Shown piece by piece: positions 17,266-61,470 of a stretch of 64,000 bases of DNA (position 1 is its first letter; every line of letters starts with the position of its first letter). Location: the NCBI GenBank assembly GCA_964234715.1, contig OZ174275.1. The stretch is one strand, 5' to 3'. The notes beneath the pieces were generated by a model. It made no database searches and was not told the origin of the DNA. It was given only the letters and a program-made list of their open reading frames with translations. The position numbers and the translations under genes are program-made. This DNA comes from Podarcis melisellensis (lineage: Eukaryota).

Positions 17266-17400
17266 CTGTCCCAACCAGCGAGGCACTACTTGTTGGCTGA
17301 TGGTAGCAAGCAGAACTAGATGTCCAAAAGGAACGAACCATTCATTTATTTAAGGAACTGAAGTTGGGAACTTGACGGACGAATGCAGAAAGCTGAAGTC
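17266..17400 (-). other. SAXO4: Putative non-coding first exon (5' UTR) of SAXO4
   Basis: Strong minus-strand donor CAG|gtaagg at 17266/17265, just downstream of tandem RFX motifs. The first coding exon has an acceptor only 5 nt before its ATG, so an upstream exon is expected. TSS is approximate. Confidence 0.55.
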
Positions 17401-17409
17401 TAGCAGCAT

Positions 17410-17436
17410 GTAACCTAGCAACCAGCACCTAGCAAC
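17410..17436. promoter_or_regulatory. Tandem RFX X-box-like motifs, likely SAXO4 promoter
   Basis: GTAACCTAGCAAC (17410-17422) and GCACCTAGCAAC (17425-17436); CCTAGCAAC is a classic RFX half-site. Confidence 0.65.
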
Positions 17437-19009
17437 TAGCTCGACAACATTGCTCTCCTTCCAATGGCCTTATAGTTCAGAGGGTATTGGGAGCAACTGC
17501 AGGGGCCCTGGGCACATGCCCAATACGTACAGGAAATGGTTCTGATTATTTGGATTCCTAAATATAGCCCTTGAGGGGTTGAGGTCTGTGTTTCCTGAGC
17601 CATTGTCCCATTGTATTCAAGTTGAGCTACTAGATAGGAGCTGGGGAGGTATGCAGCAGTTGAACAAGGTAGAGTCACCAGAATCAGTGCTGCCACCGCT
17701 CCCAGGTCCGTAAAACATAGAACAGTACCAAGTGGGCAGAAAGGAACATGTGTAAGGCTGTGTGCCTACTAAATGTCTGTAGTTAAAGCTGTGCAGTGTA
17801 ATTCAAGTGTAACTTTAGATGTCCGGCACACAACTCTTGAGAATTTAAGCCTTCGCCACCATTATCCCATCTCCCAATGTTCTGCATTTGTATCTGCGAA
17901 ATAATATTGAAATGTTATTGTAAAGTCTTAGCAATATGAGTTGCGGGTTTCAGATAGCTCAGTTTTGGTGCTGTATGATTCTGTTGCTTACCTAGGACTA
18001 AAATAAGTGTATTTGTGTTATATTTTACTCATGTCATTGAATGTGGCATTGCTTGACACAGAATCTCTGCAATCTGAACTCTGACACGGAAGAGAAATCT
18101 CTGAGCATACAAAATTAAAAATATGTAAGTTACACATCACTTTTGATCAAGCCTGCATGTGAATATTTAGTATTGAGGAAACATCATCAACATGCTTATA
18201 ATGACACCATGTGGTAGTTTAAAGGTAATGCCATAGACTAGATGGCTGCAAAGAAACATGTAACCTTAAGCAAGACTTTTAACGTTCTGTGTGATAAGGG
18301 GCGGGGGGGGGGGGAACCAACTCTAGGAGGGCCAAGCTGTATTTCAAATTGTCACACAGCTAGCAAGTTTTAATAGGATTTTTTAAATTTAAAAAAGTAC
18401 ATTACATAAAACATCTTCTGCAGAAACACCTGGGTGTCTGAAAGTGTTACTTATATGATTATTGAAGAAGTCACTGCTGGCTAGAAGAAAAAGTAGTTAT
18501 GTATCCTAGAACAATTTCAAACACCTGTTTTGAAAATACCTGACTCCCAGTAATTGACTGAAAAGTGGAAAAGAGCCTAACAGGGTTAGACACAAGCCAC
18601 ACAGTACTGTTTTCTTCTTTTTGCACCATCAACTTCTAAAAATAGAATAGCTAAAGTTCATTCAGCTACGAATGCTAGCAGTCGATTGGGTGAAAAAAGG
18701 AAATACAAGCAGACTGAATAAACAGTGTATGTTTATGAAAATTTATGAACAGAGACATAGGCTGATTTATTTGCTTTTTTAAGTATTTCACATAAAATTT
18801 TCTAATGGAAGGGTGATCCCCTTTGGAATAAGGAATTTGTAGTGAAGAATCTTGTTTTTTCAGCAAATGGCACACATTTTTGTGTTCTGGGAAATAATAT
18901 TCTTGTAAGTTAAATTCTACTTTCAGCTTCTAATTTTTTGTTCTCATTTTGTCTATGTTGAGAACTGCCTTGTGACCTTTGAATGAAAGGCAGTATAAAA
19001 ATGTAATAA

Positions 19010-19210
19010 ATCATAGAATTGGAAGGGTCCCAAGGGTCATCTAGTCCAACCCCCTGCAATGCTGGAATCACAGCTAAAGCATCCATGACAGATGGCCATC
19101 CAATCTCTGTTTAAAAACCTCCAAGGAAGGAGAGTCCACCACCTCTCATGGGAGTCTGTTTCACTGCCAAACAGCTCTTACTGCCAGAAAGTTTTTTCGA
19201 ATGTTTAGTT
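19010..19210 (-). mobile_element. CR1-type LINE 3' fragment
   Basis: ATCATAGAATTGGAAGGGTCCCAAGGGTCATCTAGTCCAACCCC is the reverse complement of a CR1 terminus. Confidence 0.7.
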
Positions 19211-21325
19211 GGAGATATTCATTGTTTAACAGTCTATTGTGTACTTCTATATTAAACTTTGCTTGGTATAGCAAGTGGGTGGGAATTATTCTACATCTGA
19301 GGGTGGGGGGAGACAGTGTGAGTATTCACTAACTGCCAAACACATCAAATTACAACAACTACAAAGGACAGACAGTATCCATTTAATGCTGCAGCTACCA
19401 CTATATCAAACAGTAGCAAATGAGGGAAGAGGAGCGAAATGAATAGACACCGACTATAAAGGATAGGGTCAGCGGGGGGGGGGGGGAATTATAACCATGT
19501 GCCACTGGTTTTTACTGACAAGTGCCAGCTAAAACCTTGAGTCCCAAGTTGAATTAAGGTAGCTGGGGACCCTGGCACAATTCCCAACATACGACTTTCT
19601 TCCCCCCACAAAAAACACATAAGGTACCACAGAATAGGAGCTGCCGTCCATTCTATGCAGGAATTAGGCCCCTCTGTGCATCCACTGTCACCGAGTAGCA
19701 GTAATTACATCTGCCTGTTACCAATGATGGTAGAGAAGGAATGCAGGGCCAGTCCACTGGGACAGCTGAGAGATCAGTAACTTTTGGCGCCTCCTTTCCT
19801 TGCATTTTCCCATCCCAGCTGGTCATTAAAGCAACTTGAAAGCATGGATTTGAACCAGAGTTTGCCTATTTCCTCCTAGCTCCCTCCATTTCTTTTTGTG
19901 TCATTTCTTTTTAGATTATAAGGCTGAGGGCATATATAGCGATTTTAATGATTTGTAAGCTGCTCTGCGAGCCTTTTTTGGCTGAAGAGTGGGATTTAAA
20001 AAATCTTTAAATAAATAGGAAACACACACGCACACTGCCAAGGACATACACGAGGGCAATATGCAAGGACCAAATCTTCCATATGCAGCTTGTTAATGTT
20101 GGCCTCATTGATCTACTGAAGATGTACTAACAAACAGCACCAAGAATAAGAATAGTCTTCTAGGTTAGGGACACAGGGTTGTAGCAATTGGACAAAGGCA
20201 GTAGCAAATAAACCTATCAAGCAGAATGGAAGGAAAGTGATGGGCACATCCACCAGTTCATAGGCTGACACAGCTGAAAACTGGTAAGTATATCCAGAAC
20301 TGCACTTGTGGGGAGGCCTGAGGCAACCCCATTGCTGTCATGTGACTGCATGGAGTCAGATCACTGCACCAACTCCAGCAATTGGCTTTAGGAATGTACC
20401 TTCAGCATCTAAGATGTCCAGTAATGAATTACTTATATGGGGTTGCTATCCATTCATTATTGAAAATACACTTATAGCATAAAGAGTACTATAGACTTCC
20501 ACAAATCTACGATTCTCAATCATTCGTTCACCTTTTGGCCAGAATCATACAATACAGAAATCTGCCCAGGAATCCTGGAACTGAGCAGAATATAAAATAA
20601 TACTACAGCTGTATAAGAATAATGATAATGATAATTTATTATTTATAACCCACCCATCTGGCTGGGTTTCCCCAGCCACTCTGGGTGGCTTCCAACAGAA
20701 TATTAAAAACAATACAGTGTCAGACATTAAAAACGTCCCTAAACAGGGCTGCCTTCAGTTGTCTTTTAAAAGTAAAATAGTTGTTTATTGCCTTGACATC
20801 AGCTGGGAGTGTCGTACCTTTGAAGTCGAACAGAATCCGTTCCGGAAGTCCATCCAACTTCTGAAACGTTCAACTTCCAAAGCGCGGCTTCTGATTGGCT
20901 TCAGAAAGCTTCTGCAGCCAATCGGAAGCCGCAGAAGCCCCGTCAGATGTTTGGCTTCCTAAAGAACATTCGAAAACCAGAACACTCACTTTCAGTTTTC
21001 AATTGTTCAGGAGCCGAAACGTTCGACTCTCAAGGCATAAATCACATAACTGTGATTTGTTATGTATAATTTAACAACCATGTGCATTTCTCAATTAACC
21101 AGAACACACAACAATGTATTTTGTTTTTATCAATCAGCCTGCAGTCCTATACCAGTGGGATTGCTGAAGTGCATTCTGAGTCAGAAAAGGTACTCTGTTA
21201 ACACTTCTATACCTGTCTTCTCAGAAGTGTTGCATTGAATTTAATGGGAGCTATAACCAAGTATCTAAAGGACCACACATCCTTTTTGGGGGGCAATTAG
21301 TCTTCAAGAAAAAAAGCACTGAAGC

Positions 21326-21331
21326 TTTATT
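21326..21331 (-). terminator. Probable SDHAF2 poly(A) signal
   Basis: Minus-strand AATAAA ~130 nt after the stop codon. Confidence 0.55.
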
Positions 21332-21462
21332 ACAGATAAGTAAAGCATGGAAAACAGTGACCATTCACAAGAGTGGGACTCAAGAGGCCTGAATACCACA
21401 GTGTGTGCTTCTAGGTTTCAAACGATGTCCAGACTGTATGGCCTTCTCCAGAAACCACAAGA

Positions 21463-21593
21463 TCAGTGTGAAGCTTCAACAAGATACTCAAGATCTGGTT
21501 GTTGCTGTCTCTTTTCTCTGTTCTTGTTTTTGGTAAACTCTCTAAGCATCTCCATGACTTCATTTTCAAAGATTTCTGGAGCAGGCTTTGCTT
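21463..21593 (-). CDS. SDHAF2: SDHAF2 exon 4 (coding part)
   Basis: cccaaag|[43 protein letters not shown]. Confidence 0.95.
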
Positions 21594-24500
21594 CTTTGGG
21601 GAGAAAAAAGGAAGAAGTGAAGCAACAGTATAAGCTCTGCTACCAATGTCTGACGATTCTGTACACTGAGGTGTCCACCAGATGTTGGATTCCAACTCAT
21701 CAGTGCCAGCCAACAAAGATAAGAGTTGTAGTCCAGCAAAATCTGGATGAAATCACATTGGCTACCCCTGCTCAGAACTACAGAGTCTACAGATCTAGTA
21801 GGTTTTCCAAGATCATTTTGTCACTGGACTTAGAATTATTTGTCAAGCCCCATTTCAAAGACATCCCAGTTAGTGTGTTAAGTACAGAAAAGGAAACAAA
21901 ATGGAATGCTTGCTTTGCAAACAAACGAAAGACATTTCTTATGTGTCAGGGAGCAAGAATGTTTTTGGAACTTCTTGTAAAATGGCAGTGGGAAGTCTCG
22001 TCCCGTGGCCCTAATTAGGCTGGTGCAGGTCACATGAGGCTGTTGCCCACAAGACGTCGTAAGTGAAATGGGGCAGGTATGGGCAAGAAAAGAACAATCA
22101 GGAGTTTAAGTGAGTTCTCAATTATTTCTTTGAAAGAAGGGTTCTCTGTCAGCACCAATCAGCTGATTAATGCAGACAGGGAGCCCTGCTGGGAGTCAGT
22201 GGCACTCCAAACAGAGCATTTTCCTCTTTGTAGAGAAAAAACAACTAGCTGTTTGGAGCAAACACTTTGAATCCTAATTGCTACCTCCAAATGGACTTCA
22301 AAGGTTCCCTGTAATGCTCGTCAGCTAATTGGTGCTGAAAGTGCATCTTCAAAGAAGATTGTTGTATAGTAACCCATTTGAATGTTGATAGGTGTCATTT
22401 GATGTATTATGCCATCAGGTGACTGACAGTTGGGTGGTCCCATGCATCTGTCAAAGTTGGCCCATGGGAAGCAGAGTATTGGTCTACTAGCCAGATCCAG
22501 TTCCCCACCGCTACCATAAAATATATAATATACAGTGGTACCTCGGGTTACAGACGCTTCAGGTTACAGAGGCTGCTAACCCAGAAATAGTATCTCGGGT
22601 TAAAAACTTTACTTCAGGATGAGAACAGAAATCACGCAGCAGCGGCACAGCAGCAGCAGGAGGCCCCATTAGCTAAAGTGGTGCTTCAGGTTAAGAACAG
22701 TTTCAGGTTAAAAACGGACTTCCAGAACGAATTAAGTTCTTCACCTGAGGTACCACTATATTATCATTAACTATACAGCAGTTCTGCAACTTAAAACTAT
22801 ACTTGTTAAGGAGGATGTTAAATTCTACTAAATTCAAAAAGGGCTTACTGCAAATAAAAATACACATGTTTTAAAGGTAGAGTATACATTAGTTATACTC
22901 TTGATTAGCCTGACTGCTAGTTGGAATGTTTATATGGTGAACATGACAATTTTTAGACCCTGCTCATAGCTAACTGTATTTCAGGTTGTCAGTGACAAAA
23001 CCTTTTAGGACAATCACACACATTTTCAGGACAGAGGTTTAAATATTACATGTACTGTGCTGCTGTGTGTGGTCCAGAGGGCAGCAACACGAAAACAAGC
23101 ATTTTCTGTGACGGATTCCTACTTGTGGAATGTTCTCCCCAAAGGGGCTTGCCAGATGTCTTCATTTACATATCTTTAGGCATCAGGTAAAAACATTCCC
23201 GTTCTCCCAGGTCTTTGGCCTTTTTAACTGTGTGCAGGGGGGTTATTGTTTTTGTTTGTTACTATGTTGTATATTTTTAAGTTTTTATATTGTGAAATGC
23301 CCTTCATAAGACACGCCCACCAAGTCACATAAGAGCCAATAGCAAGTGACCCCAAAATACAGTGTTTTGCTTTACCTGTTGCCCAGTAGTAGATATCCCA
23401 ATCATTGCTGGGCTCATTAATCAGGCGATCATAAAGATCCAGCTGTTGCTCATTCATTCGATTCAGATTCTCTTTGGCAAAGAAACTATGGAAACAATAA
23501 AACAGCATACTGGGAAAACCAGATGAGGTAGAAAAAAATACCACAATGTAATAAATATACTACATTCTGGCTATGCAAGTGTCAGAAATTTCCGTACACC
23601 CATTCAGACAAACAAAAGGCATTATTACAGTTTAAGGTCCAGGCAAAAGCAATGAGGAGCAGGGCTCCTGAGGGCTGTGGCCTTTGGAGAAGAGTCCCAG
23701 AAGCTGGATAGAGGGGCTCAGAGGGGAGACCACATTCAGCCCCAGGTTCCCTCTACCAGTTCAAGATAAACCAATGTCTGACTATACCCTTGATAACCAA
23801 GAGAAAACAGAATGGACAATCTTCTCCTTTTTCCTCTATAAGCTGATTTTCAATATTCCATAACAATGCTTCCTAGCGCTGTCCCTGGATAAGGGTATTT
23901 CCAAGTGCAAGGAAAGAGCAACATTTCTTTTTTTAAAATGTAGGTTTATAAAATGATGCACAATATGGAGAAAGTAGACAACAATGATTTTGTACTCACT
24001 GTTTTTCAGCTAAATTTCCAGTTGCATTTTATCAGTTTAAACTGCCCAGAGAACATACGGTAGTTTCATCATTCTTATCTCTGTTTTATATACATTATAA
24101 AATGAAACAACAATTATAATATTAAATATTTTAATATTTAAAGACTCGATTCTTAATATGGTTACCAGGAAACAAGTCCAAGTTGAAAGCAACGAGCAGG
24201 TTTAGGAAAGGCAGAACAGAAGGCGACGGCTCACCTGAGCAGGAGGCAGTTCTCCAGCATGCCCCTCTTGCGGCTCTCGTACAGCAGCCTCGCGCGCTTC
24301 CTCGCCGGGGCTTCGTGGGGCCGGGCCTGCCAAGGCGGCAGAGGGATCTCCAGCAGATCCCGCCCGGAGTCGGAGGGAGAGTCCCCGCGGTAGCAGCACT
24401 TCGACGAGCGGAGGACGCAGGCAGGGAGCAGAAAGAGGCGCTGCGAGACAAACAGGCAGGGAAACGGCGTCAGGCAACCAAGGGCAGCGGCAGCAGCAGC

Positions 24501-24796
24501 GTCCGACCCACCACTCCGTTACTACGCGAACGCGCCGGAGCCCCTGCTGGTGCGGCGGTTAGGGAGTCGGACTAGGACTCGGGGAGGCCGTGACGCTCAG
24601 GGGGTGACCTTGGGGGCCAGTCGCTGCCTCTTAATCTCAGCCTAGCCCACCTCGCAGGGTTGGTGTTGTGGGGTCAGGAAGCCTATGCGCTTCACCCTGA
24701 GCTCCTTGGAGGCGAAGCGGGGGACACGAATTCAACAAATGCCTAGATACATAACGTGCATCTCCCTTTACTCACGCGAACGCTCAGCGCCGCCAT
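21463..24796 (-). CDS. SDHAF2: Succinate dehydrogenase assembly factor 2, mitochondrial (155 aa)
   Basis: Exons 24776-24796, 24235-24440, 23376-23485, 21463-21593 (468 nt in total). Contains [70 protein letters not shown] and PDLEYL, which are diagnostic of SDHAF2/Sdh5. Confidence 0.97.
22533..22758. mobile_element. Non-autonomous Tc1/mariner-type (Tigger-like) MITE
   Basis: TIRs CAGTGGTACCTC / GAGGTACCACT(A), flanked by TA on both sides; in SDHAF2 intron 3. Confidence 0.8.
23376..23485 (-). CDS. SDHAF2: SDHAF2 exon 3
   Basis: catag|[37 protein letters not shown]|gtaaag. Confidence 0.97.
24235..24440 (-). CDS. SDHAF2: SDHAF2 exon 2
   Basis: ctcgcag|RLFLLPAC...[10 protein letters not shown]|gtgagc. 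Confidence 0.95.
24776..24796 (-). CDS. SDHAF2: SDHAF2 exon 1 (coding part)
   Basis: AGGATGGCG start, MAALSVR|gtgagt. Confidence 0.85.
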
Positions 24797-25099
24797 CCTG
24801 GTTTCCTCCGCAGCCGCTCTACCCTTCGCGGCCCACCATAGACACAGAGGCCTCTACGGAAGCCTCTCAGCTTCTCCACAACGCATGCGCCCTAAAGCCA
24901 CTTCTCGGCCTCCCACGCCCGCTTCGGAAAAGCCGCCTACGGAGAGGGGCCTTTTCTGTTTTTGTTTACTCTTGCGAGAGGCGGCACAGCAACAGGCCGG
25001 AAGGGGCGGTCCTTGCGGAAGGGGCGGGGCTCGGCAGGGAGGAAGGGGCGGGGCAACGGGAGGAGGCGCTGGCTGTAGCGGTGAGAGGAGGAGGAGGAG

Positions 25100-25231
25100 G
25101 AGGAGGCGGCCGAGGACGAGGGGGGGTGGGGGTTCGCGCGCGCGTTTTGGGCCTGCCTGGGATTGCTAGGCCTTGAGCAGTATAACGGGCCCCGAGCGGC
25201 GCCGGGGAGGCGTCGGAGCTTCGTGGCCGGG
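25100..25231 (+). other. CPSF7: Putative non-coding exon 1 of CPSF7
   Basis: Donor GG|gtgagc at 25231/25232, branch point CTCACTAAC 25518-25526, polypyrimidine tract and cag| at 25569 ahead of the ATG exon. 5' end is approximate. Confidence 0.55.
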
Positions 25232-25626
25232 GTGAGCGCGGGGGAAGTGGGCAGCGGCGGCGGCGTGTCTCCGTCGCAGCGCGGGAAAAAGGAGGCGATG
25301 GCGGGCGCGAGCGTCCAGGCGCGCGCAGCTATGGCGGCCCGCGGAGGAGGGGAAGCGGGGAGGGAGGCGGGGGCGGCCCGGCGGAAGGTCCCGTGGTCCG
25401 AGTGGCACTGAGGCGGCGAGGGGGGCGGGGCCGCCTGCGCGGGATCCTCGGCGGAGCGGGGCTGCGCGGGAACGGGCCTGGGCTCTGCCGGCGGCGGCGG
25501 CCGCGTGAGGCGGCGATCTCACTAACCTGCGTCTCCTTCCCCCTTCTCTTTGCTCTGTGACCCCCGCAGTGCGGCTCTTTCTTCTCCCCCCACCCCCGGT
25601 TCTCTCGGCGGCTCCCCTGGAGAAAT

Positions 25627-25680
25627 ATGTCGGAAGGAGTGGACCTCATCGACATCTACGCCGACGAAGAGTTTAACCAG
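25627..25680 (+). CDS. CPSF7: CPSF7 first coding exon
   Basis: [18 protein letters not shown]|gtgagc. Confidence 0.96.
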
Positions 25681-28600
25681 GTGAGCGCGGCTGCGGACCC
25701 CGCTGGGTGGGCGTAAGGGCTGCGCCACCGTCTCGGCGGGATGTGGAAGGGCGGCAGGTGAGCGCTAGAAGAAGAGGCGAACTCTCCACGAGCCCCGAAA
25801 CTTCGGCCCGTGCTGAGGTCTCAAAAGAGAGGTTTGTCCTCAGGTGCGTTGTTAGGCTGCTGGAGCATCCTTTCCTTTCACGGTAGAAATACGAAAATCT
25901 CTGTAGAAGCAAATTCCGTTGTGTGAAAAGTTTGTTGAGTGAGAAGTGAATAGTGTTAAATCAGCGTTATAACTGGAGATTTCCTAATAAACTCCTCACA
26001 TTTGCCAATTGGTGTGAATTGTTTTACTCTACAGGAAAGAAAACATGAACCAAATGAATGCATGTTTGAAGAAATGTTGAATCACTATTTGTGCGTGTGT
26101 GTTTTGGAATGTATGAAGTCTTCCTTTTAAAAAAAGAAATAGGAAGTTACAGCATGATAGAAATAGAAAGTAATAGCATGTTAGTCTACGTAGTCTCTCA
26201 AGTGAGAGGTGCCTTCCTGGAATCAAGTTAACATAACAGTTGAGGATGCTGAATCTTTTAGAAATATCTAACCTGGGTCAGTGAGCAGACCAAGATGGTT
26301 GGTACAGTAGCTCCTGCATATGTGATTTCAAGTTACATAGTATTCTGTCCCATTCGCTGCACCACATTGACACAAAAAAATTAAACATGGAAACTGACAG
26401 GCAATTACGCAGTTAATCACAGGCAATACTAGCACCTTCATAGGAAAAGATCATTCAGTTTTGTGCACACATTGCTTGCAGTACATATTCTTTATAGCCT
26501 AAAAAGTGAACAATTAAGTGATGTTAGGGGTGTAGGTAACAGCAACTTTAGTCCACCTTACAGTTCTACATTTCATGCCTGCTTATACCTAATATTTTTT
26601 GTTACAATTATAAATTGGGTCATCTTAGTTATTGAAATGACTGTGTTTAATGGGAGAAAGAAGTGGAAAGACAGGACAACCTTTTCTGTCTGATGTATTA
26701 ACTTTGTGTGAGAGTGCATTGCACTAGAAATCAAATCTGGTTTGTGGTGTATATTGTTCCCTATTGATTTCAATCCTCAAGGCTTGATTACTGTAGCACA
26801 CTTTATGTGGGGCTACCCTGTATCTAGTCCGGAAGCTTCAATTTGTGCAGAATGCAGTGGCCAGACTGCTCAAAGGAGCAACACACTACTCTGCTGCTGA
26901 GGGAGCTGTTGTGGTTGCCTGTTTGTTACCTGCCTAGGTTCAAGGTACTTACATTAATTCACAAAACCCTAAACAGTACAGGCCTTTGCCATACAATTTT
27001 TCTCTTTAATGATGTTTTATTGATGCTTTTTGCTGCTTTTATTTTTATATGCTGTTAACCACTTTGGTATATTTTGATGAAAGTGTGGATTATAAATACA
27101 TAAATAAATAAATAGAAATAAACACCCACATGTGTTTCAAGTGTGTGTTTACGTATTACTTTAAATAGAACATTAAGAAGGCCGTGCAATTCCATAAGCA
27201 GTAGGACTGGAACCAAACTTACACTGAACAGAATTATACTGTAACCACAGAAACATGGCAACCAGCAGCCAGTTTGTTCATAATAACTCCTTTAGTGGCA
27301 TTGTTCAGTGGCAGAGCACAACAAACCACGCAGGAGGTCCCAAGAGCAGTCCCTGCCATCTCCAGATAGTGACTGACTGCTGTCTGAAGCCCTGGAGAAC
27401 CTTTGCCAGTCAGTCTAGCAAATACTAAGCTATATGGACAGTGGTCTGACTTGCCTTAAACCAGCACCTGATATTCCTACAAACCTGGGCTGAGGAACAT
27501 ATAGCTCCATATGCTTTAGGCCTCCGCCTGCTACCTTCTGTCCTGGGCCACATGGTTAGTGCTCAGGGATGATGGGCATTGTAGTTAAGCACATCTGGGT
27601 GGGTCACAGGCTTCCTACATGTGCAGTACTCATAGTCCTTACTCCAGGTAAAGATAAAGCATATAGTTTATATTGCCAAGGTCCCAAGTTTGATCTTGCC
27701 ACCTCCAAGCAGAAGCATTTCATCTCCATTTTGTCCCATCCTTAACTCCTGGTCACACCCATTCTTTCCTGTTGATTTATTTACTACTATGCATAAGTTT
27801 CATTTCACAAGGGTTCTGGTTTATGCTCATTGTGTATCCCTGTATGTGGTTATAGCACTAGATTGATTGGTCTACAAGAGAGGATTAATACCTATATGTC
27901 AGCTTTCCTGTATCTTGGTTTGGAATGTGTAGGAACATTTCCTCTTTTGGGTTGACGTTAGGGGTGCCCAGTGCTAATTCCCTCCAATGTCAGGTGTATT
28001 CATGTACATGCCATCTTGCATTCACAACTAGTGCAAAGGGACTTTACTGTTTTCAGTAATTTTGAATATATGAATGCTGGTGAAGTTGTTGCAACATCAC
28101 ACAGGGCTTCTGCTGCTGCACTAATTGTTTTTTCTGACTGCATGGCTCTAGGTAATGACCACATTTCATCTCTGGGAGCATTGGATGGATGGATGCTTGT
28201 CTCTGGAAGGCATGGGGTGTATGTTAAATGTTCCACTTGATCAGGAAAAAATTATTGTATTCTGCCTATAGTACCCCATTTTTAAATATTCTGTTCCCTA
28301 TCAAGAGTAAAAGAAGTATAATGCGAGTATGTAATGAATTAATTTTTATCTATAAGAGGTTTTCATATTTCTACAATAGTTTTCTAGAGTAAAGGATTGT
28401 TCTTGTAAACTTGGTAATCTGTTCTGGCGAAGGTGTTCTACCCTGAAAAAGTTTTAATTACAACAAATCACTGGTGTAGATGACACCATTATAGCTTTCA
28501 GACAAATATGTTTTATATATTTATTTGAAATTCCTAGTTGTGGCAAGAGAAGAAACATAAAATATATTGAGGACCAAATCCTCTTGTTCAGGTATTGGTT

Positions 28601-40600: not shown

Positions 40601-43152
40601 ATTGGATACAACACCGTCTATTTTAGTTGTCACTGTACCAAAGAGTGGGTTAGTCAAATATTTCCCTTATATTCAGCATGGTTTGATTAATTTTTATGCT
40701 ATCTGTCACATTTTCGTTTTTTTCCCTTGAAGCTTCCTGATTTTGCTTTTCCTTAAATGAGAAAGTTCAATACATTTGTCTCTGATAGTATGTGATGTTC
40801 TAATCAGTTACATTAAAAATGAATATTTTAATATATCTTTATATATAATATAACATACTCACTATGGCTGAGATGTAAACAACATAGACACCAGTTCAGA
40901 TTTCACCTTGGCTACAAGCTCAGTCACTAGGTAATATTAGGTAAGCCACACTTTTTCAGCGTAAACACCTATCTACAATCTTTGCGATAAAGACCTGTCA
41001 AGTAGGATTATTAGCAAGTTTACAATGCTTTGAACACACTATAAGCACTATATGAATGATAAGTATTACTTGAATGCTCAGGCAAAATTTATTTCACTGA
41101 AAGTGAACAGTGTAAAATACATTCAAGACATTCTAAGACCATAAATGAAATGTTCTCAGTTCAGTTTGGACACACGGCTATTGTAAATTGTAATTAAAGT
41201 TAAGCATGGATTTAGCATGTTATGCTGCCTGTCCATCTGACTCATAATCAGTGCATGTTACAACTATCTCTGTCAACTCAGCACACAACACTTAAGAGAG
41301 CTCTTACAGATCTCTTGGCCAAGACTGGGAATGCCCAGTTCCAGAGCAGGAAGGTATCTCTCTAGATACCTCAACATTTACCCAAATCAACCCAAAAATC
41401 TGTGTGCACGTACCAATGAAACCCACCTTTTCTCACATGTATGAGGTAAGAGTTCTGATATTTGGGCAAGGTGTTATTGCAATTCAGAGGCATGGTGGTT
41501 GACATGGGTGTACTTACTGGAAAGCGGGGAGAGGATTATTTTGTCAGAAAACTGACCTACCCAACTGCTACAGTGTTGAGCGCTTTTCCTCTTCTGTGAT
41601 GTCTGACAGGGGTGCCTCCGAGGGCTCACTCAAGGGATTCCTCCGACTCAGTAGATGGCCGTGCCACTCCGACAGAGAATGCTGTGCCGCCGCCACGCAT
41701 TGAGAAGCCTCCTGTGTTGCCTTTCTTCAACCGCCCTCCTTCTGCGCTTCCTCTCATGGGGCTTCCACCTCCACCCATACCACCCCCTCCTCTTTCCTCA
41801 AGCTTTGGGGTTCCCCCTCCCCCTCCAGGAATCCACTACCAACACCTCATGCCCCCTCCCCCTCGACTTCCTCCACACCTCACTGTGCCACCTCCTGGGG
41901 CCGTGCCACCTGCGCTGCACCTCAACCCAGCCTTCTTCCCCCCACCCAATGCAGCAATGGGGCCCCCGCCAGACACCTATAACAAGACCTCTGCAGCATA
42001 CAACCACAGCAGGTGAGAGCAAGCCCATTCCCAGGAATCTGAAGGAAAAAAAATCAAAACTAAGCAGTGCAAAGAACAGTAGCTAAGCCTCTTGTTTAGC
42101 AAGGCTGCAGACCTAATTCTCCAGGGGCTTAGTTATTTAGTTTTTATGCAAAGAGTGATGGTTCGACTAGACATGAAACCACTTTCTCGTTGGTGGTAGA
42201 AAATGCCTTGCATAGCTCTAGGGCACGACAGCTGACAACTTGGTTCTTAAAGGATGCTACTTAATGTCTGCTTTGGGGAGGAGGGCAGTACCTGGTCAAC
42301 CACACCTTGCTGTTTTGAAAGGCCTTGAATTGCCATGTCTATGAATAAGGAACCGTGTCATAGTTCTGCTTGAAGCTGTTTATCCTCTGTGTGTGATGGG
42401 TGTGTGTTTGTGTTCTACAGCCGGGAACTGGGCCCTTTGCCACCTCCTGTCAGTGAAGCTGAATTTGAAGATATCATGAACAGGAATCGAGCAATTTCCA
42501 GCAGTGCCATTTCCAAAGCTGTGTCTGGTGCCAGTGCAGGTAACCAGAGCTGGCTTTTGCTACATCTTGCCATTTCTCGCTCCTGGCCTCATTCTTACCA
42601 TGCCGCCTTTGCCCTGTTATATTTCAGGGGACTACAGCGATGCCATTGAGACCCTGCTCACAGCCATCGCTGTGATTAAACAGTCACGTGTCGCAAATGA
42701 TGAGCGGTGTAGAGTCCTTATCTCTTCACTCAAGGATTGTCTTCATGGCATTGAAGCCAAGTCTTACAGCATGGGCACCAGCAGCAGCTCCTCCAGGTGA
42801 GCTTCAGGCACAGTTATTGCCAAGTCATCCAGCTACTGTCACTCATGTTGCTGATGAGCGAGTCTCAGTTGTGCTCTGGTCCCCTTCCTGGGCTTTGTAC
42901 AGCCAGGTAGGAATAAGTGCTTTTGGTAGGGGAAAGGGTCTTGTTACAGCTTGCCAGTAACTAGATACCTCATTGTTTTCCAGAAAACGGCACCGGTCTC
43001 GGGATAGATCACCCAGTCGGTCTCGTGAGAGCAGTAGGAGGCACCGAGACGTCGTCCATAATGAAGATCGGCATGAGGACTATTTCCAGGAAAGAAGCCG
43101 GGAGCATGAGCGACATAGAGACAGGGACAGAGAAAGAGACCGACATCACTGA
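25627..43152 (+). CDS. CPSF7: Cleavage and polyadenylation specificity factor 7 (CFIm59), 460 aa
   Basis: Exons 25627-25680, 34629-34847, 35786-35889, 37394-37539, 41610-42012, 42421-42539, 42628-42796, 42984-43152 (1383 nt). [18 protein letters not shown] start, RRM ([16 protein letters not shown]...[17 protein letters not shown]), Pro-rich region, [29 protein letters not shown], and an RS/RE tail ending RDRHH*. Confidence 0.98.
34629..34847 (+). CDS. CPSF7: CPSF7 coding exon 2
   Basis: ttctag|[17 protein letters not shown]...AVYVGSFSW|gtgagt. Confidence 0.96.
35657..35723 (+). repeat. Local 30-bp tandem duplication
   Basis: GAGAAGGATGAGTTCTCTTACTAATATAAG at 35657-35686 and 35694-35723. 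Confidence 0.9.
35786..35889 (+). CDS. CPSF7: CPSF7 coding exon 3
   Basis: catag|[36 protein letters not shown]|gtgagc. Confidence 0.96.
36809..37055 (+). mobile_element. Full-length tRNA-derived squamate SINE (Squam3-like)
   Basis: tRNA-like head with A box TGGTGTAGTGG and B box GGTTCGCGTCT, CORE-like GTGACCTTGGGCCAGTCAC, CT-rich tail. Confidence 0.8.
37394..37539 (+). CDS. CPSF7: CPSF7 coding exon 4
   Basis: ccag|[22 protein letters not shown]...FEAQARK A|gtaagt. Confidence 0.96.
41610..42012 (+). CDS. CPSF7: CPSF7 coding exon 5 (Pro-rich)
   Basis: gacag|[13 protein letters not shown]...YNHS AG|gtgaga. Confidence 0.95.
42421..42539 (+). CDS. CPSF7: CPSF7 coding exon 6
   Basis: ctacag|[40 protein letters not shown]|gtaacc. 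Confidence 0.96.
42628..42796 (+). CDS. CPSF7: CPSF7 coding exon 7
   Basis: tttcag|[46 protein letters not shown]...|gtgagc. Confidence 0.96.
42984..43152 (+). CDS. CPSF7: CPSF7 last coding exon (RS/RE domain)
   Basis: ttccag|[22 protein letters not shown]...RERDRHH*; donor gtgaga 5 nt after the stop. Confidence 0.96.
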
Positions 43153-45460: not shown

Positions 45461-47435
45461 GAGCGTGGGAAGCATTCAGTGTTTTTATGGACTCTGATCT
45501 CCTCTCCTTAATCAAGACTAAAATATGGAGGCTTCTCCACCCCCTCCTTCCCACTGCCCTCTGCTCTTTCCGGACCCCTTGGAAGGGACTTTGCCTGCAG
45601 AACTCCATCTGGCACACCATGGTATTGGAACCTGAGCTCTGCCTGTGTGCTGTTGCTGCTGCTTGATGGAGAAGCACTGAATGACTTGGAGGGGGGGGGG
45701 TTGGTTGTCTGAGCCACCGTGACCAGGGGGCCACTTCAATCCATGGATTCTTGGACCCAAAGAGAATGGTGCTTTCCACAGAGGTCTCTCGCCTCTTTCC
45801 TTTCCGTGGCTTTTTTAGGAGCACTGGGGAAGGAGCCCATCCAGCTCGTCTCCTGCGAGAAAAACTGGTGCTTCAGCACAGTATGAGATGTCTGACCCTA
45901 TTCTCCCCGGAACTCGTGTCCACGGTCCACACTGCATTGTTTTCTTAGGCATCGAGGCATCCATTCCTCCTTAAATCTGATCCTTTTTCCAAAGCAGCTT
46001 CAGTCTCGCCCTCCAGCACCGTTGTACACAGCTTAGAAAACAGTATTTCCCTGCTAGGATGGAAGGCAGGCTGGCTGCTTCTTCGGGTCACCCCTCTTCT
46101 CCCTTCCTCCTTTAGTTGCGGGAAAATGTCACCTCCTTTCTACCTGGCTTCTTCTAGAGGGGCCTCCGTTGGTCAACCAGCTCGCAACGTTGAATCTCCC
46201 TTAAAAAATAGATCTGGCTACTGCAGGTCCGCTTTCCACTGATTTGCTAACCATTTTCCTCGCTTTGTTTCATGCAATAGCTGCTCCAGTTGTAACTTCT
46301 GATGTAAACCTTTGTTTCTGGGGCCAGCCCCTCCCAGATTGCCGCCTTCCTTGTTGTAGAGGAAGTGTTGTGAACGGAGACCATAGAATGGAACGGGGCA
46401 AAGTCAAGCTGGGGCTACCTGGAAGTTACCGAATGCAGCACACCCTAAGCATTTTTAAAATTCTATGTGATGTACTTGTTGAACGTGTTGATTTAAGGTC
46501 CAGAGCTTTCCTTGGCCCCAGCCTCCTTTTAAAAGGAGTTCCTTTTTGGAGTGGTTCACTCATGAGTTTGCTTCAGATAGCACCATACCTCACTGATCTC
46601 TGGCATGCCAGTCTAGGGAGACGATTAGAGACAGTGGGAGGCGTCTCTTCACACCACCATATTTAGCCGTGTTATGTAATCGTAAGTAGGGTTTCTGGAG
46701 CCACTCTAGTCACCAGGCAGCCCTTTGAGACCAGTTGCAGCAAAAACCTGCTTGTTCGGAGCATTATGGGACAAAAGCACCTGCAGAGTTCTTGATTAAG
46801 CTCTCATCTTTGAGTTGCAACCCTTCGGGTGTTCATTTTCAGCTTTCATTGCTCCATCCTAGCCTGAGCACCCAGTTACTTAAAATCAAGGTAACACGTT
46901 ACACCCTGGAATATGCAGTCTCCAGCAACTGGATCTCGGTGGTGAGGCCAAGCATCTGTTGTGTTCATGAACACTTAATGTGATTGTTCAGCTGCATGGT
47001 GAAGCCTCCCTTGTAGAAGGACCCTGTTTTGTCTCACAGAACAATATTGTGGACTAAGGCGGAGGGGGTGGTGTCTGGCAAAGGATGTTCTTGTGTGATG
47101 TGGCACCTCCTTTTGTACTGTTGATCACAGAGGTGCTCAGCTCTAAATGTGGTTTTTAAAAAAAATAAAACGGGGAAAGTTGTGTAAGCAATGGAGTGAC
47201 AACTTAAACTGTAAAATATATTAAAAATTGATGATTGGAAAAGTTGCTTTTTACATAATGGACATTTTTAGTTTGTTTTGAAATAATGGAAGTAAGAAAA
47301 GAAAGAAATGGAACAACAGAAACATAGCCTTGGTTCCTCTCAACTCACCCACCCCTGTTCTTCGTGATTTGATTTGTTTGTCTTTTTCTGATAGGTTGGA
47401 AATTGTGTAATAAACTTGATGATATTGTCAATCTT
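45461..47435 (+). other. CPSF7: CPSF7 terminal non-coding (3' UTR) exon
   Basis: Strong acceptor ttttgttttgtctctttttag| at 45460 pairs with the donor at 43158. AATAAA at 47164-47169 and 47409-47414, with a U/GU-rich downstream element. End is approximate. Confidence 0.7.
47409..47414 (+). terminator. Probable CPSF7 poly(A) signal
   Basis: AATAAA flanked by TGTA motifs, with U-rich sequence downstream. Confidence 0.65.
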
Positions 47436-48254
47436 TTATACTGCATTGTATGGCTTCTTTTCATTTTGTAACTATTTTGAATCCTGGGTGAGCTGTTTTC
47501 TAGAATCTCCACTAAATATGAGCAGGGGGGGATGGAAAAGAAGATAGATAGATAAGACAGGTGCCATATTTTGGCTGGGTAGTAGCCCTTGTACAGCCAT
47601 GGTTTTATGTATTGCTAAACTAGTTCCAAACCCACTTTATGTACACAGATTAAAATGATTTTTTAAAAGCTTCTATCTCTCAGTCATCTCCATTTAAAGG
47701 GGAGTGTCTGGTAGCAAGCCAAGGAAAGATTTGAGACCCTTGAGAATTTCTGCCAGTGTGAAATCAGTACACTGAATGAAGATTCGATGCTCAGCATCAT
47801 TTTAAGTAGCTCCTTTAAAAAATATTTGCTCTGGAAAACGTGAACAGAAATCACAGGTTTCATAAAAAGGGATAAGCATTATGCTGAACAGAGATGGGGA
47901 AATGAAGCCACGGTGGAAACAGATGAAACTCAAACCCTTTGAAAGGGGATTGTGCCTTTCGCGTGAAATTGAATATTACAGGCAAGGAAATATAATAGCA
48001 TATAAGGGCTTTCTGTCTATGGCAGGAAAAGGTTCAGTTACAAGAATATTGTCCTGATTGCTAGTGGTATTCAGTGAAATGTTTCTGGGGATCATAGGCT
48101 TGCCCAGATGGTTTGTGTTTCACCTTCCTGAAGGTTTGTCATACAAGGGCATTTGCCTGTGACTGGCGGGTGAGGTGGTAGTACTTTCAGAATGCAGCTT
48201 GAGTGGTGAACAGTCTGTGGGAGGGGCTTCATGCTGAGTGGGTGGGTTTACCTG

Positions 48255-48267
48255 GTTGCTAGGTGAT
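48255..48267. promoter_or_regulatory. RFX X-box-like motif upstream of the fascin-like gene
   Basis: GTTGCTAGGTGAT (reverse complement ATCACCTAGCAAC), ~95 bp before the ATG. Confidence 0.45.
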
Positions 48268-48360
48268 GATTGTGATCTAAGGGACCAGGATTAATCTCAA
48301 GTGAGCCCAGATAACTGGTCTGATGAATGGGTACCATTCAAGTCTCTTGTTATTCTCACC

Positions 48361-48666
48361 ATGACATACTCACTAGAATTTGGCCTTGTTAATGCGGCCA
48401 ACCGGTACCTGACTGCTGAACCTTTCCGTTTCCAGGTGGCAGCCACAGGCAAGCAACTGAAGCCTCGCCAGTTGTGGGTACTGCAGTTTGTGAGCCCACA
48501 GGGAGCTGGGGCAGCTGGCCCAGGAGAAGGGGCTGGCCAAAAGCTTCACCTGATCAGTGCACTGAAACGCTACTTGGCGGCTGACGCAAATGGAAAAGTC
48601 ACCTGTGACCAGGACAAACCAGGGCCTCAGACCTTCTTTCTCTTGCATCAGTATCCAGATGGCAAG
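48361..48666 (+). CDS. Fascin-like exon 1
   Basis: Good Kozak ACCATGA; MTYSLEFGLVNAANRYLTAEPF...HQYPDGK|gtgctg. Confidence 0.9.
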
Positions 48667-56247: not shown

Positions 56248-56273
56248 GAGCATCTGACCTTGCTCTTCCCACC

Positions 56274-56676: not shown

Positions 56677-57283
56677 CCAAGGATGCAGTAGAAAACCAAG
56701 TATCACAAATTATCAATACACACCAATAACAACACTGATTTGGGGGGAAGCGGCACAAGGCCTGCTGCCCTTATCCCTACCCCCATTCAGGAAGAGGGCA
56801 CAGGAGGTAACACAACAATTAGGGAGGATGAGCAAGACTGCCCTCCTGAGTCACTGCACACATGCTAGAGTCTTGAGTTGTTAGAATGTACCACGCTGGG
56901 GAATTCAGAGGACACACCAGCTGCAGGCAAAGTCTGATTATTAGGTGGCATTCACTGGCCCATAGTCTTTTGACTTGCGAGAGTCAATTACCCAAGGTAC
57001 AACGTTGGAATGGATCAATCAGCGCCCTCCAGGAGGATTGCAAGCTTAGTTAGGGTGGGTGGGTCTGTCATCTCATGAAAACTGTTTCCAGACACTGGAG
57101 ACCCTGCTAATGGTGCTCTACCTGAATGAGCTTGAAATGAGAAGTTGAGCCGCCTTCTTTCAGCTTATTGGGGGAATTGGACCCACACCTCATCTTGTTC
57201 CAGCCACAGAAATGGAGGGTTCATGCAGCCTCTCTCCAATCTGAAGAGCACACGGTTCCATACATTGCAGCCCACAAAGGTTC

Positions 57284-57299
57284 TCAGTAAGAGTCCAAG
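57284..57299 (-). CDS. TMEM216: TMEM216 exon 5 (coding part)
   Basis: ctctctattttctgcag|C TTG GAC TCT TAC TGA gives ...FSSLDSY*, resembling the mammalian ...FSSMDxI* ending. Confidence 0.75.
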
Positions 57300-60200
57300 C
57301 TGCAGAAAATAGAGAGCGAAACGTGAGGATCTTAGAAACAGCGACGGCAAATACCTCAGCCTTCTTACCCAATTTACAGTGGAACAGACTGAACACCTAT
57401 TCCAAGGATGGGGAACCTGCAGCCCTCCAGATGTTGGAATCCAACTCCCACCATGGCCAATAGTCAGTGATGATTGAAGTTGTCTAGCAACATCTGGGGA
57501 GCCCATGTTCTATTCCATTGATTCCCCTGTTTGAAGAAATAATCCAACCAACATAAATATATGATAAGCCACCTGTGCAATTTAGCATTACATCATTGAG
57601 CCTGAATCAATCAGAAAAAGAACGTCAAACTTGCATGTTCTCCCACAACAGCCAAGGAGGACTTCAGCAGGATTTTATGTTCTCTATTTAATTCTACTTT
57701 TAAAGAATCCTAGCTTAGCATTATGTCTGAACTAGGAATCCTGGTTTAAAACTCTGGTAAGTGCCATAATAAATCAACTTCACACTATGGGTTATGAATT
57801 TGGCTTCTTAAACTGATCAGAGTTACAGTATACCAATTTCCAGAGAGTATAACAGAAAGGTTTGCATTCAACACAGCGCTAAGAAGAAAAATTTCTCCTT
57901 GTGCAATTGAACATTTTCCCCACCTGCATGCCCCTTAAATCTGCTCTGGGAATGGCATAGGGCACAGAAGTCCCACTGTACTAATATAATCCTTGCACTA
58001 ATGTGGATACTTGGTTGAATATTGTCCAAGGCTAAGCTAACACATTTATTACAGCTTAAGCTAGTCCATGAAAACTTATGCCATAACTAATTTGATGCTT
58101 TTTAATGTGCCACAGGACTTTTGTTGTTTTAAACCAGGATTCTTGGTTCCAACATGATGCTAAATGGGAATTTAAAAGTGAAAGTAAATCCTTCCAAGTC
58201 CTCCCAGCCATAAAGGAAGAGGATATGGGGACTCACACACGAGCCTGAAACTTCACTTAGCACTAAACCCAACATTACCAGTCAGTGTCTTAAAAAACAA
58301 AATCTAATCAATGCACATAAAAAAATATTTCCATAAAATACCATAATGGTAGGCAAGTAAAGTACCTGGAGAAGGCAGCCAGAGTGAGAACACCCAGTAA
58401 CAGCTCCACAGCATAGAAGAGGAGGAGGATAGCATTAAGGATGGCCTCCAGCCGCAGAGCATAAGTCTGCAGCAGCAGATAATAGGCTGCCATCACTGCT
58501 GCTGGAAAGGTTAAAGCCAGACTGATAGCAAGTGGCACTTTCCGTTGACAGAGGTTCCCTTTTGAGCCTGCCGTACACAGCAAATATGAAAAAGAAAATG
58601 CATAGACCTGTTCAGCATAAAAGCCACAATATTTGGAATCTGAGGGCACAAAATGAATAGTTCTACTTTTCAGGGATCAGTTCTCATTTAACTAAATAAG
58701 TTAAAAAATTGTCCAGTAGCACCTTTGAGACCAACTAAGTTTGTTCTGGGTATAAGCTTTTGTGTGCATGCACACTTCTTCAGATACACTGAAACAGAAG
58801 TCACTAGACCTTTATATAGAATGGGAGGTGGGGTGGGGTATTTCTCGGAAGGGTAGTAGGAGATGGGTGATTGGCTCAATGGGTATGGTAAACCTGTTGA
58901 CGACTGTGAACAATTTTTTATTTTTTTTTTAATTTTTTTTATTATTATTTATTTCAACTGCATCAGACCAACACAGCTATCTACCTGAATCAAGAATCAT
59001 TTAACTGAGAATAAGGTTTTGCATTTAACATTTGTACTGTAGTTCATAAGCTAGTCTCAGGTCAGGAAGGACAGTCAGACTGGATGAATGGGATCTCATA
59101 TTTCCGCCCACATAATGTTGTCTTGCCTCCTACCTACTCCCGAATTAGGGAATGTACCACAGAGCCCCTTTTTCAGCCTTTGGGCATCATTTCATTGGAG
59201 GCACCTATTCCAGTTCAGCAGAATAATTAGGAAGGCCTGGAATGATGGGAGTGAAGGCACTGTCAGCAATTTACACTCTGCTCAACTACTCTACTCTCAA
59301 ACACCTTTGCTGTTGGAGAAGCAGAATTTATCAATGAGTGAACCACAACAACAACAACAATAATAAATTTTATTCATATCCTGCCCATCTGGCTGGGTTT
59401 CCCCAGGAGTCATCTTTTCAGGTCAAGTGCCATCAAAGATGCTCACAAAATGGCAGGTGAGTGCACTACTCGTAAGAACATTTTTATTGAATACTCACCA
59501 AAAAATATCCGGGTCACTTCAATCCCAAGATAGAGAAAAAGCATAATCAGGTCCAAAGCCAAATTGGCAGAGGGGTAGGGCAACAGGAGTCCTAAGTGGG
59601 TGCAGAAATGGACATATGCATTAAGAGAACAGCAGAGCAACAAACACTGGGACATGGATGGTTCTGAAAAAGGCTGTGAACTCTCAAGCAGCTAGGTGAG
59701 AAATAAATAATTACACTATCCACTTTGTTCTTTCACTTTCTTCAGGTGAGAGCCACAAGGTAAATGCGTAAAAAAAACCTTCTGCAGGCAACCCAAACAC
59801 ATCATCCCTTCAAAGACTCACCTTTATAGACAAATATGAAAATCTCCAGCAGAAAATATGTTGCGTAATACCAGCCATTCAGGAACAGGAGAATCTCCAG
59901 AGGGGTGGAGGAGAGCTGGCGATCTAGGGGGTGAAACGAGAACATGATTATCTATGGGGTACACATTTGTTGTTCCACTCTCATCTTCTCTCAAAGAGGA
60001 GCAGTACAAACTTTCTTGAGAGACTATATAAGGGTTCATGTACAATTCATCTTGTCCCCCTGCTTTCCAGCAGAATCAGAGCCAATGGCAATTCTGGTTT
60101 TCCCAGGACTGCCATTTGTTCCAATCTATCCCAAGGTGGGTTTTCCCTCGGAAAGGAGCAGGGCAAAGGGTGTGAGTCAAGCAGAAACTGCTGCTAAGAA

Positions 60201-61007
60201 GCCAAGCAGCAATGAGAAGGTCTCAGTTCTGTTCTAAACTCAGTCAACAGAGACCGGTGCGAGGTGAAGATTGTCAAAATGGAAGCCCTGAGATGACAAC
60301 AGCCATTAGGGGACGCCAATATTTGTACTGGGTTGGACAAGGACAGAAAACACAAGCCCTGTGTGCAGCCACTCTCCATTTCCCCTTTCTTGTATTTGCA
60401 CTGGACGCTGTGAGCTCAAAATTGGGATGCTGCGGCCTCACCAGCTTAGCGTGGAACCTCAGCACATGGTCTAACATACCTCAGGCAAAGGGAAACCAAC
60501 CAGCAGCAGAGAATAAAAACCCTAACCCACCGATCTGAACCCCTTGGGAGGGTCCAAAACCCCCTATTTGGGCAGCTTTATGCTAGGAGTGGGTTGCGAA
60601 GGGGCAGCCTCCCGCAGGACGTAGTGCCGAGTCTACCACCCTCCTCTGGCAGGATGGTTTTTCTGAGGGAGCTCAGCGCGAGGGTGAGCCAAGAGGCCCC
60701 GCACCAGGCTCTGGGGACCCGCGGGCCACTCTGCCTCCTTCCCCTTCGCTCCGGCTATTCCTCCCGCCTGGGGAGCGCTTGGCGGGATGCCGTCGGATCC
60801 CCGCCGTCGCTGCCGGGCTGCAGCCGGAGCCCGGTTCCCGTCCCTGCTGCAGGGCTCGGGGTGTCCTGGGCGGCGGGACGGGCGAGCGGGGTGGGAATCA
60901 AGAAGAGCCGAGCCTTCCACGGGGATCAGTCGCGGTCACGTGACCTCGCAGCCCCCAGGACCCTAGAACGCTGCCTGCCAGGATCCCGACTTACTGCGAG
61001 GCGCCAT
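57284..61007 (-). CDS. TMEM216: Transmembrane protein 216 (ciliary transition zone), 141 aa
   Basis: Exons 60995-61007, 59822-59923, 59499-59591, 58366-58567, 57284-57299 (426 nt). MAPRNRQLSSTPLEILLFLNGWYYATYFLLEIFIFVYKGLLLPYPSANLALD...GSKGNLCQRKVPLAISLALTFP...LTLAAFSSLDSY*. Confidence 0.96.
58366..58567 (-). CDS. TMEM216: TMEM216 exon 4
   Basis: ggcag|SKGNLCQRKVPLAIS...LTLAAFS AG|gtactt. Confidence 0.96.
58710..58990. mobile_element. Penelope-like fragment with degenerate hammerhead motif
   Basis: Same family as 9098-9180; the core GAAA reads AAAA (58750-58787); inverted terminal piece ACTGCATCAGACCAACACAGCTATCTACCTGAAT at ~58957-58990. Confidence 0.65.
59499..59591 (-). CDS. TMEM216: TMEM216 exon 3
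   Basis: cttag|LLLPYPSANLALDLIMLFLYLGIEVTRIFF G|gtgagt. Confidence 0.96.
59822..59923 (-). CDS. TMEM216: TMEM216 exon 2
   Basis: ccctag|RQLSSTPLEILLFLNGWYYATYFLLEIFIFVYK G|gtgagt. Confidence 0.96.
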
Positions 61008-61470
61008 CTTCCATCGCCATGGAAACCGCTACGCAGGAAACCCACTTCCGGCGGAGCTCACGGCACGGAAGCGGGAGAGGGCGGAGTGGCGCGCAGCGTT
61101 CGCGGAGGCAGAAAGGTCTGGGTTGGCGAGGCGCGCGCTCGCTCCCTCGCTCCCAGCACGTTAGACCGAATGGACGCAGAGCAGAGCCGCTCTATCCCTC
61201 GCCTCTTTGTGCCGGAAGACCCGTTAGAAAGGCAAAAAGCTCCATGCGCTACCGGATATCAGAGCCGCGTCTCTTTGGGGCGGAGGCCCAGATTCCGAGC
61301 GGGGACGGCGTCGCCTCGTCTCCATGGTAACCCATGAATTCTACCCGCGCTTCCTCCACGCGAGTTGTGGAGGCAGGAAATAAACACAGGGGCTCCGTTC
61401 TCCCGCCTTCTGACAAGGAGCGACACCTATTTCTTTGCTTGTTATGTAACGGCCCCGTTTTTCTTCCGCC
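60600..61470. promoter_or_regulatory. CpG island / TMEM216 promoter with two RFX X-boxes
   Basis: CpG-rich. Near-palindromic X-boxes ATCGCCATGGAAAC (61013-61026) and GTCTCCATGGTAAC (61318-61331); ETS-like CACTTCCGG at ~61043. Confidence 0.85.
60995..61007 (-). CDS. TMEM216: TMEM216 exon 1 (coding part)
   Basis: AAGATGGCG start, MAPR A|gtaagt. Confidence 0.88.

Follow-up and report, generated by a model that had tools for sequence, protein, structure and literature searches.

Candidate RFX X-box elements at SAXO4, a fascin-like gene and TMEM216 in Podarcis melisellensis: probably separate promoter-proximal sites

Introduction

The closest described counterparts of the locus studied here come from mouse testis. 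Kistler et al. reported in 2015 that Ppp1r32 is a target of RFX2 in chromatin immunoprecipitation sequencing (ChIP-seq) and that its expression drops about five-fold in the Rfx2 knockout (PMC4498915, S1 Table). Tmem216 and Tmem138 are RFX2 ChIP-seq targets as well, and RFX2 is bound in the immediate vicinity of transcription starts (PMC4498915). Loss of Rfx2 also lowers Fscn1 and Fscn3, neither of which is a ChIP target (PMC4498915), and since no RFX2 ChIP peak was found at them their change would be indirect. In the inner ear, early hair-cell genes carry RFX motifs, hair-cell survival requires RFX1/3 and the fascin FSCN2 is a stereocilia protein (PMC4634134). RFX4 binds between human TMEM138 and TMEM216 (Lee et al. 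2012, cited in PMC3631122 and PMC12148096). Here we analysed a 64-kb stretch of DNA from Podarcis melisellensis (contig OZ174275.1), which we call the window. It carries SAXO4 (PPP1R32), a fascin-like gene and TMEM216, and an earlier prediction from its sequence had proposed RFX X-box motifs at the promoters of all three; the published X-box consensus is GTNRCC(0-3N)RGYAAC (PMC5752003).

All motifs listed in the original prediction for SAXO4, the fascin-like gene and TMEM216 were found in place (Table 1). On balance, and by a modest degree, we favour the reading that each of the three genes has a promoter-proximal element of its own of the RFX X-box type, with no single shared module. An RFX dimer would sit on the imperfect inverted repeat near the transcription start and thereby activate the gene in cells running a cilium or flagellum programme. 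What was observed directly is the presence of the motifs, where they lie with respect to the coding exons, and that two of them are conserved. We infer RFX occupancy at the three genes, their transcription starts and the tissue in which occupancy would take place. Because the mouse orthologues of SAXO4 and TMEM216 are already RFX targets (PMC4498915), X-boxes at these two genes were to be expected and would extend known regulation. A direct link between RFX and a fascin would be new, because mouse Fscn1 and Fscn3 respond to the loss of Rfx2 without being bound.

Results

A conserved X-box-like element in the promoter of the fascin-like gene

In the fascin-like gene, 94 nt separate the end of the X-box-like element from the ATG, in good agreement with the originally estimated distance of about 95 bp. 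The element lies inside an intergenic gap of ~680 nt. Since the conserved end of the CPSF7 3' untranslated region (3'UTR) reaches ~47680, the promoter of the fascin-like gene is confined to the ~680 nt before its ATG. For comparison, exon 1 was used as the query. This search gave five related open reading frames (ORFs) on Logan contigs with 83-100% protein identity, and a profile search added a turtle protein annotated as 'fascin-like'. The upstream DNA was then compared among the Logan contigs (L001-L004, L006), the turtle loci and the annotated alligator locus. Exon-1 identity was 85-89% for the Logan-contig relatives versus 70-72% for turtle and alligator, which suggests that the former are more closely related to the window species.

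The box could be aligned in L001-L004, L006, two turtle assemblies and alligator. It reads GTTGCTAGGCATC in L002, L003 and L004, GTTGCCAGGCAGC in L006, GTTGCCAGGCACC in alligator, GTTGCCTGGTGCC in turtle and GCTGCTAGGTGAT in L001, the 96%-identical relative. The half-site GTTGC(C/T) and the adjoining ATTGT were retained in four relatives, turtle and alligator. A lack of conservation of 48255-48267 would have refuted the original prediction, but the box is conserved as far as alligator. Relative to the published consensus the box has one mismatch in the window species, L002-L004, L006 and alligator and two in turtle and L001; four of the compared lineages have a better box than the window species. 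In a 7-sequence alignment, 7 of the 13 positions of the box were invariant versus 20 of the 178 remaining positions upstream (Fisher p=5e-4). For a 19-nt composite the ratio was 11 of 19 versus 16 of 172 (p=2e-6). The box falls within the most conserved part of the promoter, and the composite pattern had exactly one match per locus in five loci of up to 23 kb, each at the orthologous place. Intron 1 of the fascin-like gene could be aligned only to L001, and therefore neutral DNA is saturated at these distances.

The conserved promoter element is, judged by this pattern, very probably functional, and an RFX site is the best reading of it. The fascin-like gene would thus be a new candidate member of the known class of RFX targets. 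The motif CCATTGT directly adjoins the box (L007 9922-9928 in turtle; L010 20388-20382 in alligator) and is conserved as well as the box itself; the window species has GATTGT at this place. On the opposite strand CCATTGT resembles a SOX-type site. In the fascin-like gene GTTGC(C/T).GG followed by ATTGT, ~90-110 nt before the ATG, is most likely an RFX site that is possibly read together with a SOX-type factor.

The same conservation would be seen if the element were functional and recognised by another protein, either a SOX-type factor on CCATTGT or an unnamed factor on the 19-nt block, with the likeness to an X-box being a coincidence. The ATTGT core varies no more than the GTTGC half-site does, the X-box differs by lineage in its second half (GGCATC, GGCAGC, GGCACC, GGTGCC, GGTGAT), and chance alone is expected to give roughly one X-box match with one mismatch in every 2 kb. 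What is invariant, GTTGC(C/T) with a correctly spaced GG behind it, is, however, the strongest part of the RFX consensus, and five of eight lineages are within one mismatch of the full consensus. Moreover, a position near the gene start is typical of RFX sites (PMC4498915). We therefore regard recognition by another factor as rather unlikely and retain the RFX site as the preferred reading. A reading as an NFI-type site was dropped, as its GCCA half was present in one lineage only.

A proximal TMEM216 box conserved as far as platypus

TMEM216 begins with a short coding exon, and the reading frame of exon 2 identifies the third ATG as its start codon. This agrees with the annotated start of the coding sequence (CDS) in the skink Tiliqua scincoides (L009). 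The proximal X-box directly precedes this start codon, at the TMEM216 end of the gap between TMEM138 and TMEM216. At the same position the sequence is GTTTCCATGGAGAC in the skink, GTTTCCATGGAGAT in alligator and GTTGCTATGGAAAC in platypus. In an alignment of the window with these three species 9 of the 14 columns were invariant and the spacing to the start codon was fixed. In skink, alligator and platypus the start context GGAAGATGGCGCC follows the box, 5 nt from it. The platypus box is an exact match to the nematode-type consensus GTHNYYATRRNAAC, whereas the box of the window species has a weaker second half and more than one mismatch to GTNRCC(0-3N)RGYAAC. The proximal box is most likely the working element of TMEM216, conserved across amniotes and in line with the RFX2 ChIP signal at mouse Tmem216 (PMC4498915). 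Of the two TMEM216 X-boxes in the original prediction, this is the one supported by conservation.

Upstream ATGs at 61020 and 61014 lie inside the proximal box, out of frame with the start codon at 61007; in a transcript that included them they would begin an overlapping upstream ORF. At least one upstream ATG inside the box is also retained in skink, in alligator and in platypus. An ETS-like CCGGAAG motif (CCGGAAGTG, ~61050; 61040-61056 on the minus strand) was found just upstream of the box in the window, in the skink (L009 9861-9869 and 9957-9964) and in alligator; such motifs are typical of start sites in CpG islands. The turtle loci end within TMEM216 intron 1. An X-box-like match in one of them (L007 20109-20121) was rejected as an orthologue of the TMEM216 box, for it lies in unalignable intron sequence ~0.8 kb upstream of exon 2.

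A duplicated motif upstream of SAXO4

The tandem motifs originally described at SAXO4 are present, and one of them is the only exact match to the consensus in the 64 kb, but the second copy amounts to a half-site that arose through a 14-nt tandem duplication. The two copies of this duplication (17409-17436) are identical at 13 of 14 positions, and here a local duplication has doubled a candidate regulatory motif. The pair lies 3.4 kb upstream of the ATG exon and 144 nt upstream of a CAG|GTAAGG donor. Two strong acceptor-like sites were found upstream of the SAXO4 ATG, near 14131 and 14062, and imply an upstream exon. The duplicated box at 17.4 kb thus plausibly marks a non-coding first exon and promoter of SAXO4.

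It is also quite possible, if somewhat short of an even chance, that the pair is not the SAXO4 promoter and that a chance match to the consensus was doubled by the duplication, with transcription starting at another place, such as immediately before the ATG exon. The distance from the ATG exon fits this explanation, as does the expectation of ~0.68 exact consensus matches per window; in addition, the putative first exon holds upstream ATGs and an AATAAA, and the motif itself was part of the basis for placing the promoter here. Nothing in the fetched loci, none of which covers SAXO4, could be aligned to this region. Against a chance match stand the uniqueness of the site in the window, its location on the correct side of the gene at a short distance from a consensus donor, the acceptor-like sites at the ATG exon and the finding that mouse Ppp1r32 is a direct RFX2 target (PMC4498915). 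We still prefer an RFX-type element of SAXO4.

Motif counts in the window

The 64 kb were scanned with the consensus GTNRCC(0-3N)RGYAAC and compared with shuffled sequence. The single exact match was 17410-17422. Sites with at most one mismatch numbered 31 versus 20.5 +/- 4.7 in the shuffles and include 48255-48267 and 61318-61331 and also 24161 and 57479. With a looser symmetric score there were 79 sites versus 73 +/- 9. The string CCTAGCAAC occurs on the plus strand at 17414-17422 and 17428-17436 and on the minus strand at 48255-48263, that is 3 copies versus 0.64 expected, and at least 3 copies were obtained in 4 of 100 shuffles. These copies represent only two independent events, because both copies at SAXO4 stem from the one tandem duplication.

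Several further sites match the consensus as well as those of the original prediction. The sites 57479-57491 and 61650-61662 had no alignable counterpart in the fetched loci and are probably chance matches. The site 24161-24173 was treated as probably chance as well; the fetched loci do not cover SDHAF2. An origin of the motif regions from dispersed repeats was ruled out by self-comparison. In the skink, a SINE-like repeat in the gap between TMEM138 and TMEM216 (L009 9110-9240) holds the X-box-like match GTTTCCTGGGTGAC at 9165, which illustrates that repeats can seed such motifs.

Organisation of the locus

Genes were placed by stop-to-stop ORFs and Pfam scans across the window, exon by exon and unspliced (Table 1). 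The order CPSF7, fascin, TMEM216 and TMEM138 is also annotated in two turtle assemblies, Tiliqua scincoides and Alligator sinensis. In the annotated synteny of platypus, CPSF7 follows directly after TMEM216 with no fascin gene in between. The annotated TMEM216 ends only ~1 kb away from where the CPSF7 CDS ends (L011 30302-31317), and therefore the fascin paralogue is absent at this position in the monotreme. TMEM138 and TMEM216 are arranged head-to-tail on the minus strand, in the same order in skink (L009), alligator (L010) and platypus (L011). The poly(A) signal of TMEM138 lies near 61690, which leaves a gap of only ~0.6 kb to the start region of TMEM216. The window has no CpG islands other than the two listed in Table 1, and none lies at the fascin-like gene, as originally noted.

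The annotation of the fascin-like gene differs by genome. In the turtle loci (L007/L008 10001-16296) it is split into products of 143 aa and 584 aa, in Tiliqua it is annotated as a product of 493 aa, and in alligator (L010 14450-20558) the annotated fascin CDS has its start 267 nt before the conserved ATG. At its distal end (47400-47680) the CPSF7 3'UTR is 72-84% identical in L003, L004, L006, the two turtles and platypus, and the non-coding DNA flanking this part is unalignable.

Table 1. Genes, predicted promoter motifs and other features of the 64-kb window
Feature	Position	Strand	Details
SAXO4/PPP1R32 first coding exon	within ORF 13844..14122	-	ATG 14017-14015; Pfam PF15691, profile positions 1-41, E=7e-17
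Putative non-coding SAXO4 first exon	17266..17400	-	predicted; ends at CAG|GTAAGG donor (17266/17265); upstream ATGs and AATAAA inside
X-box upstream of SAXO4/PPP1R32	17410..17422	-	GTAACCTAGCAAC on + strand; exact consensus match
Second copy of SAXO4 box	17424..17436	-	from 14-nt tandem duplication; single half-site CCTAGCAAC
SDHAF2	21.4-25 kb	-	Pfam Sdh5
CpG island, SDHAF2/CPSF7 promoter	24001-26000
CPSF7	last coding exon ends near 43150	+	Pfam CPSF6-like domain; long 3'UTR follows
CPSF7 3'UTR, distal conserved end	47400..47680	+	blastn matches in L003, L004, L006, turtles and platypus; ATTAAA poly(A) signal near 47650
Conserved GC box of fascin-like gene	48215..48229	+	TGGG.GGGGC-type; among the most conserved 13-nt windows; conserved as well as the X-box-like element among squamate-like sequences
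X-box-like element of fascin-like gene	48255..48267	+	GTTGCTAGGTGAT; left half-site perfect and conserved, right half weakened in window species
Conserved ATTGT core adjoining fascin box	48268..48277	+	CCATTGT in most other species; from alignments and pattern search
Fascin-like gene	ATG 48361; seven exon-like ORFs to 56244	+	Pfam Fascin
Fascin-like exon 1	48361..48666	+	102 codons; Pfam PF06268; orthologous exon-1 peptides 65-100% identical
TMEM216	exons 58311-59951 and short first exon 61007-60995	-	Pfam Transmemb_17
CpG island, TMEM216 promoter	60501-61500
TMEM216 coding exon 1	60995..61007	-	ATG 61007-61005; donor after 60995; encodes MAPR and one base
Proximal TMEM216 X-box	61013..61026	-	GTTTCCATGGCGAT on minus strand; 6-19 nt upstream of start codon
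Distal TMEM216 X-box	61318..61331	.	GTCTCCATGGTAAC; ~310 nt upstream of ATG; best consensus match at TMEM216 promoter
Two overlapping X-box-like matches	61642..61662	.	just downstream of TMEM138 poly(A) signal
TMEM138 last exons	62594-63091	-	Pfam TMEM138

Discussion

In this study we compared the X-box-like motifs of three genes in one locus with chance expectation and with the orthologous loci of other amniotes. Several observations weigh against the reading that each gene has its own RFX-type element. The motifs in the window barely exceed chance, and since the counts are so close to those in shuffled sequence the sequence of one genome cannot separate them from chance. A location of the boxes near the transcription start is a prediction for all three genes, and for SAXO4 the downstream donor is the sole support for a first exon at 17.4 kb. 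For the distal TMEM216 box of the original prediction nothing alignable was found in skink, alligator or platypus, the alligator locus having an assembly gap at this place. Furthermore, mouse Fscn1 and Fscn3 are not among the RFX2 ChIP targets (PMC4498915). For the fascin-like gene, the proximal promoter is moderately conserved throughout, so that the conservation of the motif could partly be shared background, and the upstream CDS start annotated in alligator would place the box inside the transcript. The right half of the box is weakened in the window species (GGTGAT), and L001, its closest relative (96% over 1.1 kb), carries a change from T to C in the core half-site that yields GCTGC (about L001 757-770). 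Together these two changes suggest relaxed constraint in this lineage. The change in L001 may reflect a genuine substitution or a polymorphism, or else a mistake in the assembly.

Relaxed constraint would lead to a further explanation, namely that the fascin box of the window species is a decaying remnant that has lost its second half and is effectively a half-site at chance level. Besides the altered core of L001, five changes in the middle of the element set the window species and L001 apart from the other lineages, and on the symmetric score the site counts two mismatches, as do ~79 others in the window. The perfect half-site has nevertheless been kept together with its CCTAGCAAC extension, and so have the ATTGT core and the GC box. 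The use of sites with a single strong half is known for RFX proteins. Decay of the box is in our view quite unlikely, and we continue to read it as a candidate RFX site.

The original prediction had joined SAXO4, the fascin-like gene and TMEM216 into one possible co-regulated ciliary or sperm module. In its stronger form such a module would act through shared RFX-bound elements across 44 kb. An RFX-type box occurs at all three genes, and the 13-nt string CTGGTTGCTAGGT is common to the SAXO4 and fascin sites. The human TMEM138-TMEM216 pair provides a precedent for shared control. The 13-nt identity is, however, at chance level (E=0.56), and each gene has its own proximal box. SDHAF2 and CPSF7, housekeeping genes with CpG islands, stand between the genes, and platypus keeps TMEM138, TMEM216 and CPSF7 without the fascin gene. 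We therefore consider a common module very improbable and favour separate elements for the three genes.

Separate elements are in line with the RFX2 targets described in mouse by Kistler et al. (PMC4498915). The orthologues of two of the three genes belong to these targets, the X-box lies near the start of the gene, and conservation of the proximal TMEM216 box extends to a mammal, the platypus. In mouse the binding of RFX2 was measured, whereas the reptile boxes are known here from their sequence. The human RFX4 module shares with the window the head-to-tail arrangement of TMEM138 followed by TMEM216 and X-box-type motifs in the non-coding gap; the window differs in that its gap measures only ~0.6 kb. 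The fascins that have been linked to RFX, Fscn1, Fscn3 and FSCN2 (PMC4498915, PMC4634134), resemble the fascin-like gene as actin bundlers that work, or may work, in cell types with an RFX programme. In contrast to them, the gene in the window is a separate paralogue that is absent from the platypus locus and has a conserved box in its own promoter.

Motif counts within one window failed to tell real X-boxes from chance matches, while conservation succeeded. The useful result of this analysis concerns the fascin-like gene, with a promoter element that is conserved across deep reptile lineages and a gene that is absent from the platypus locus. The 19-nt element provides a defined target for reporter and binding assays. 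As to the tissue, testis or multiciliated cells are possible, and hair cells or photoreceptors fit equally well. We tentatively propose, as a rather doubtful idea, that the fascin paralogue with its RFX-type box beside a SOX-type site predates the split of squamates, turtles and crocodilians, and that it would be an actin bundler dedicated to an RFX-driven cell type and lost in mammals. If this is true, the cell type would be a spermatid, a multiciliated cell, a hair cell or a photoreceptor. The fascin box thus offers a cheap hypothesis, according to which an uncharacterised actin bundler may work in cells that build cilia, flagella or hair bundles.

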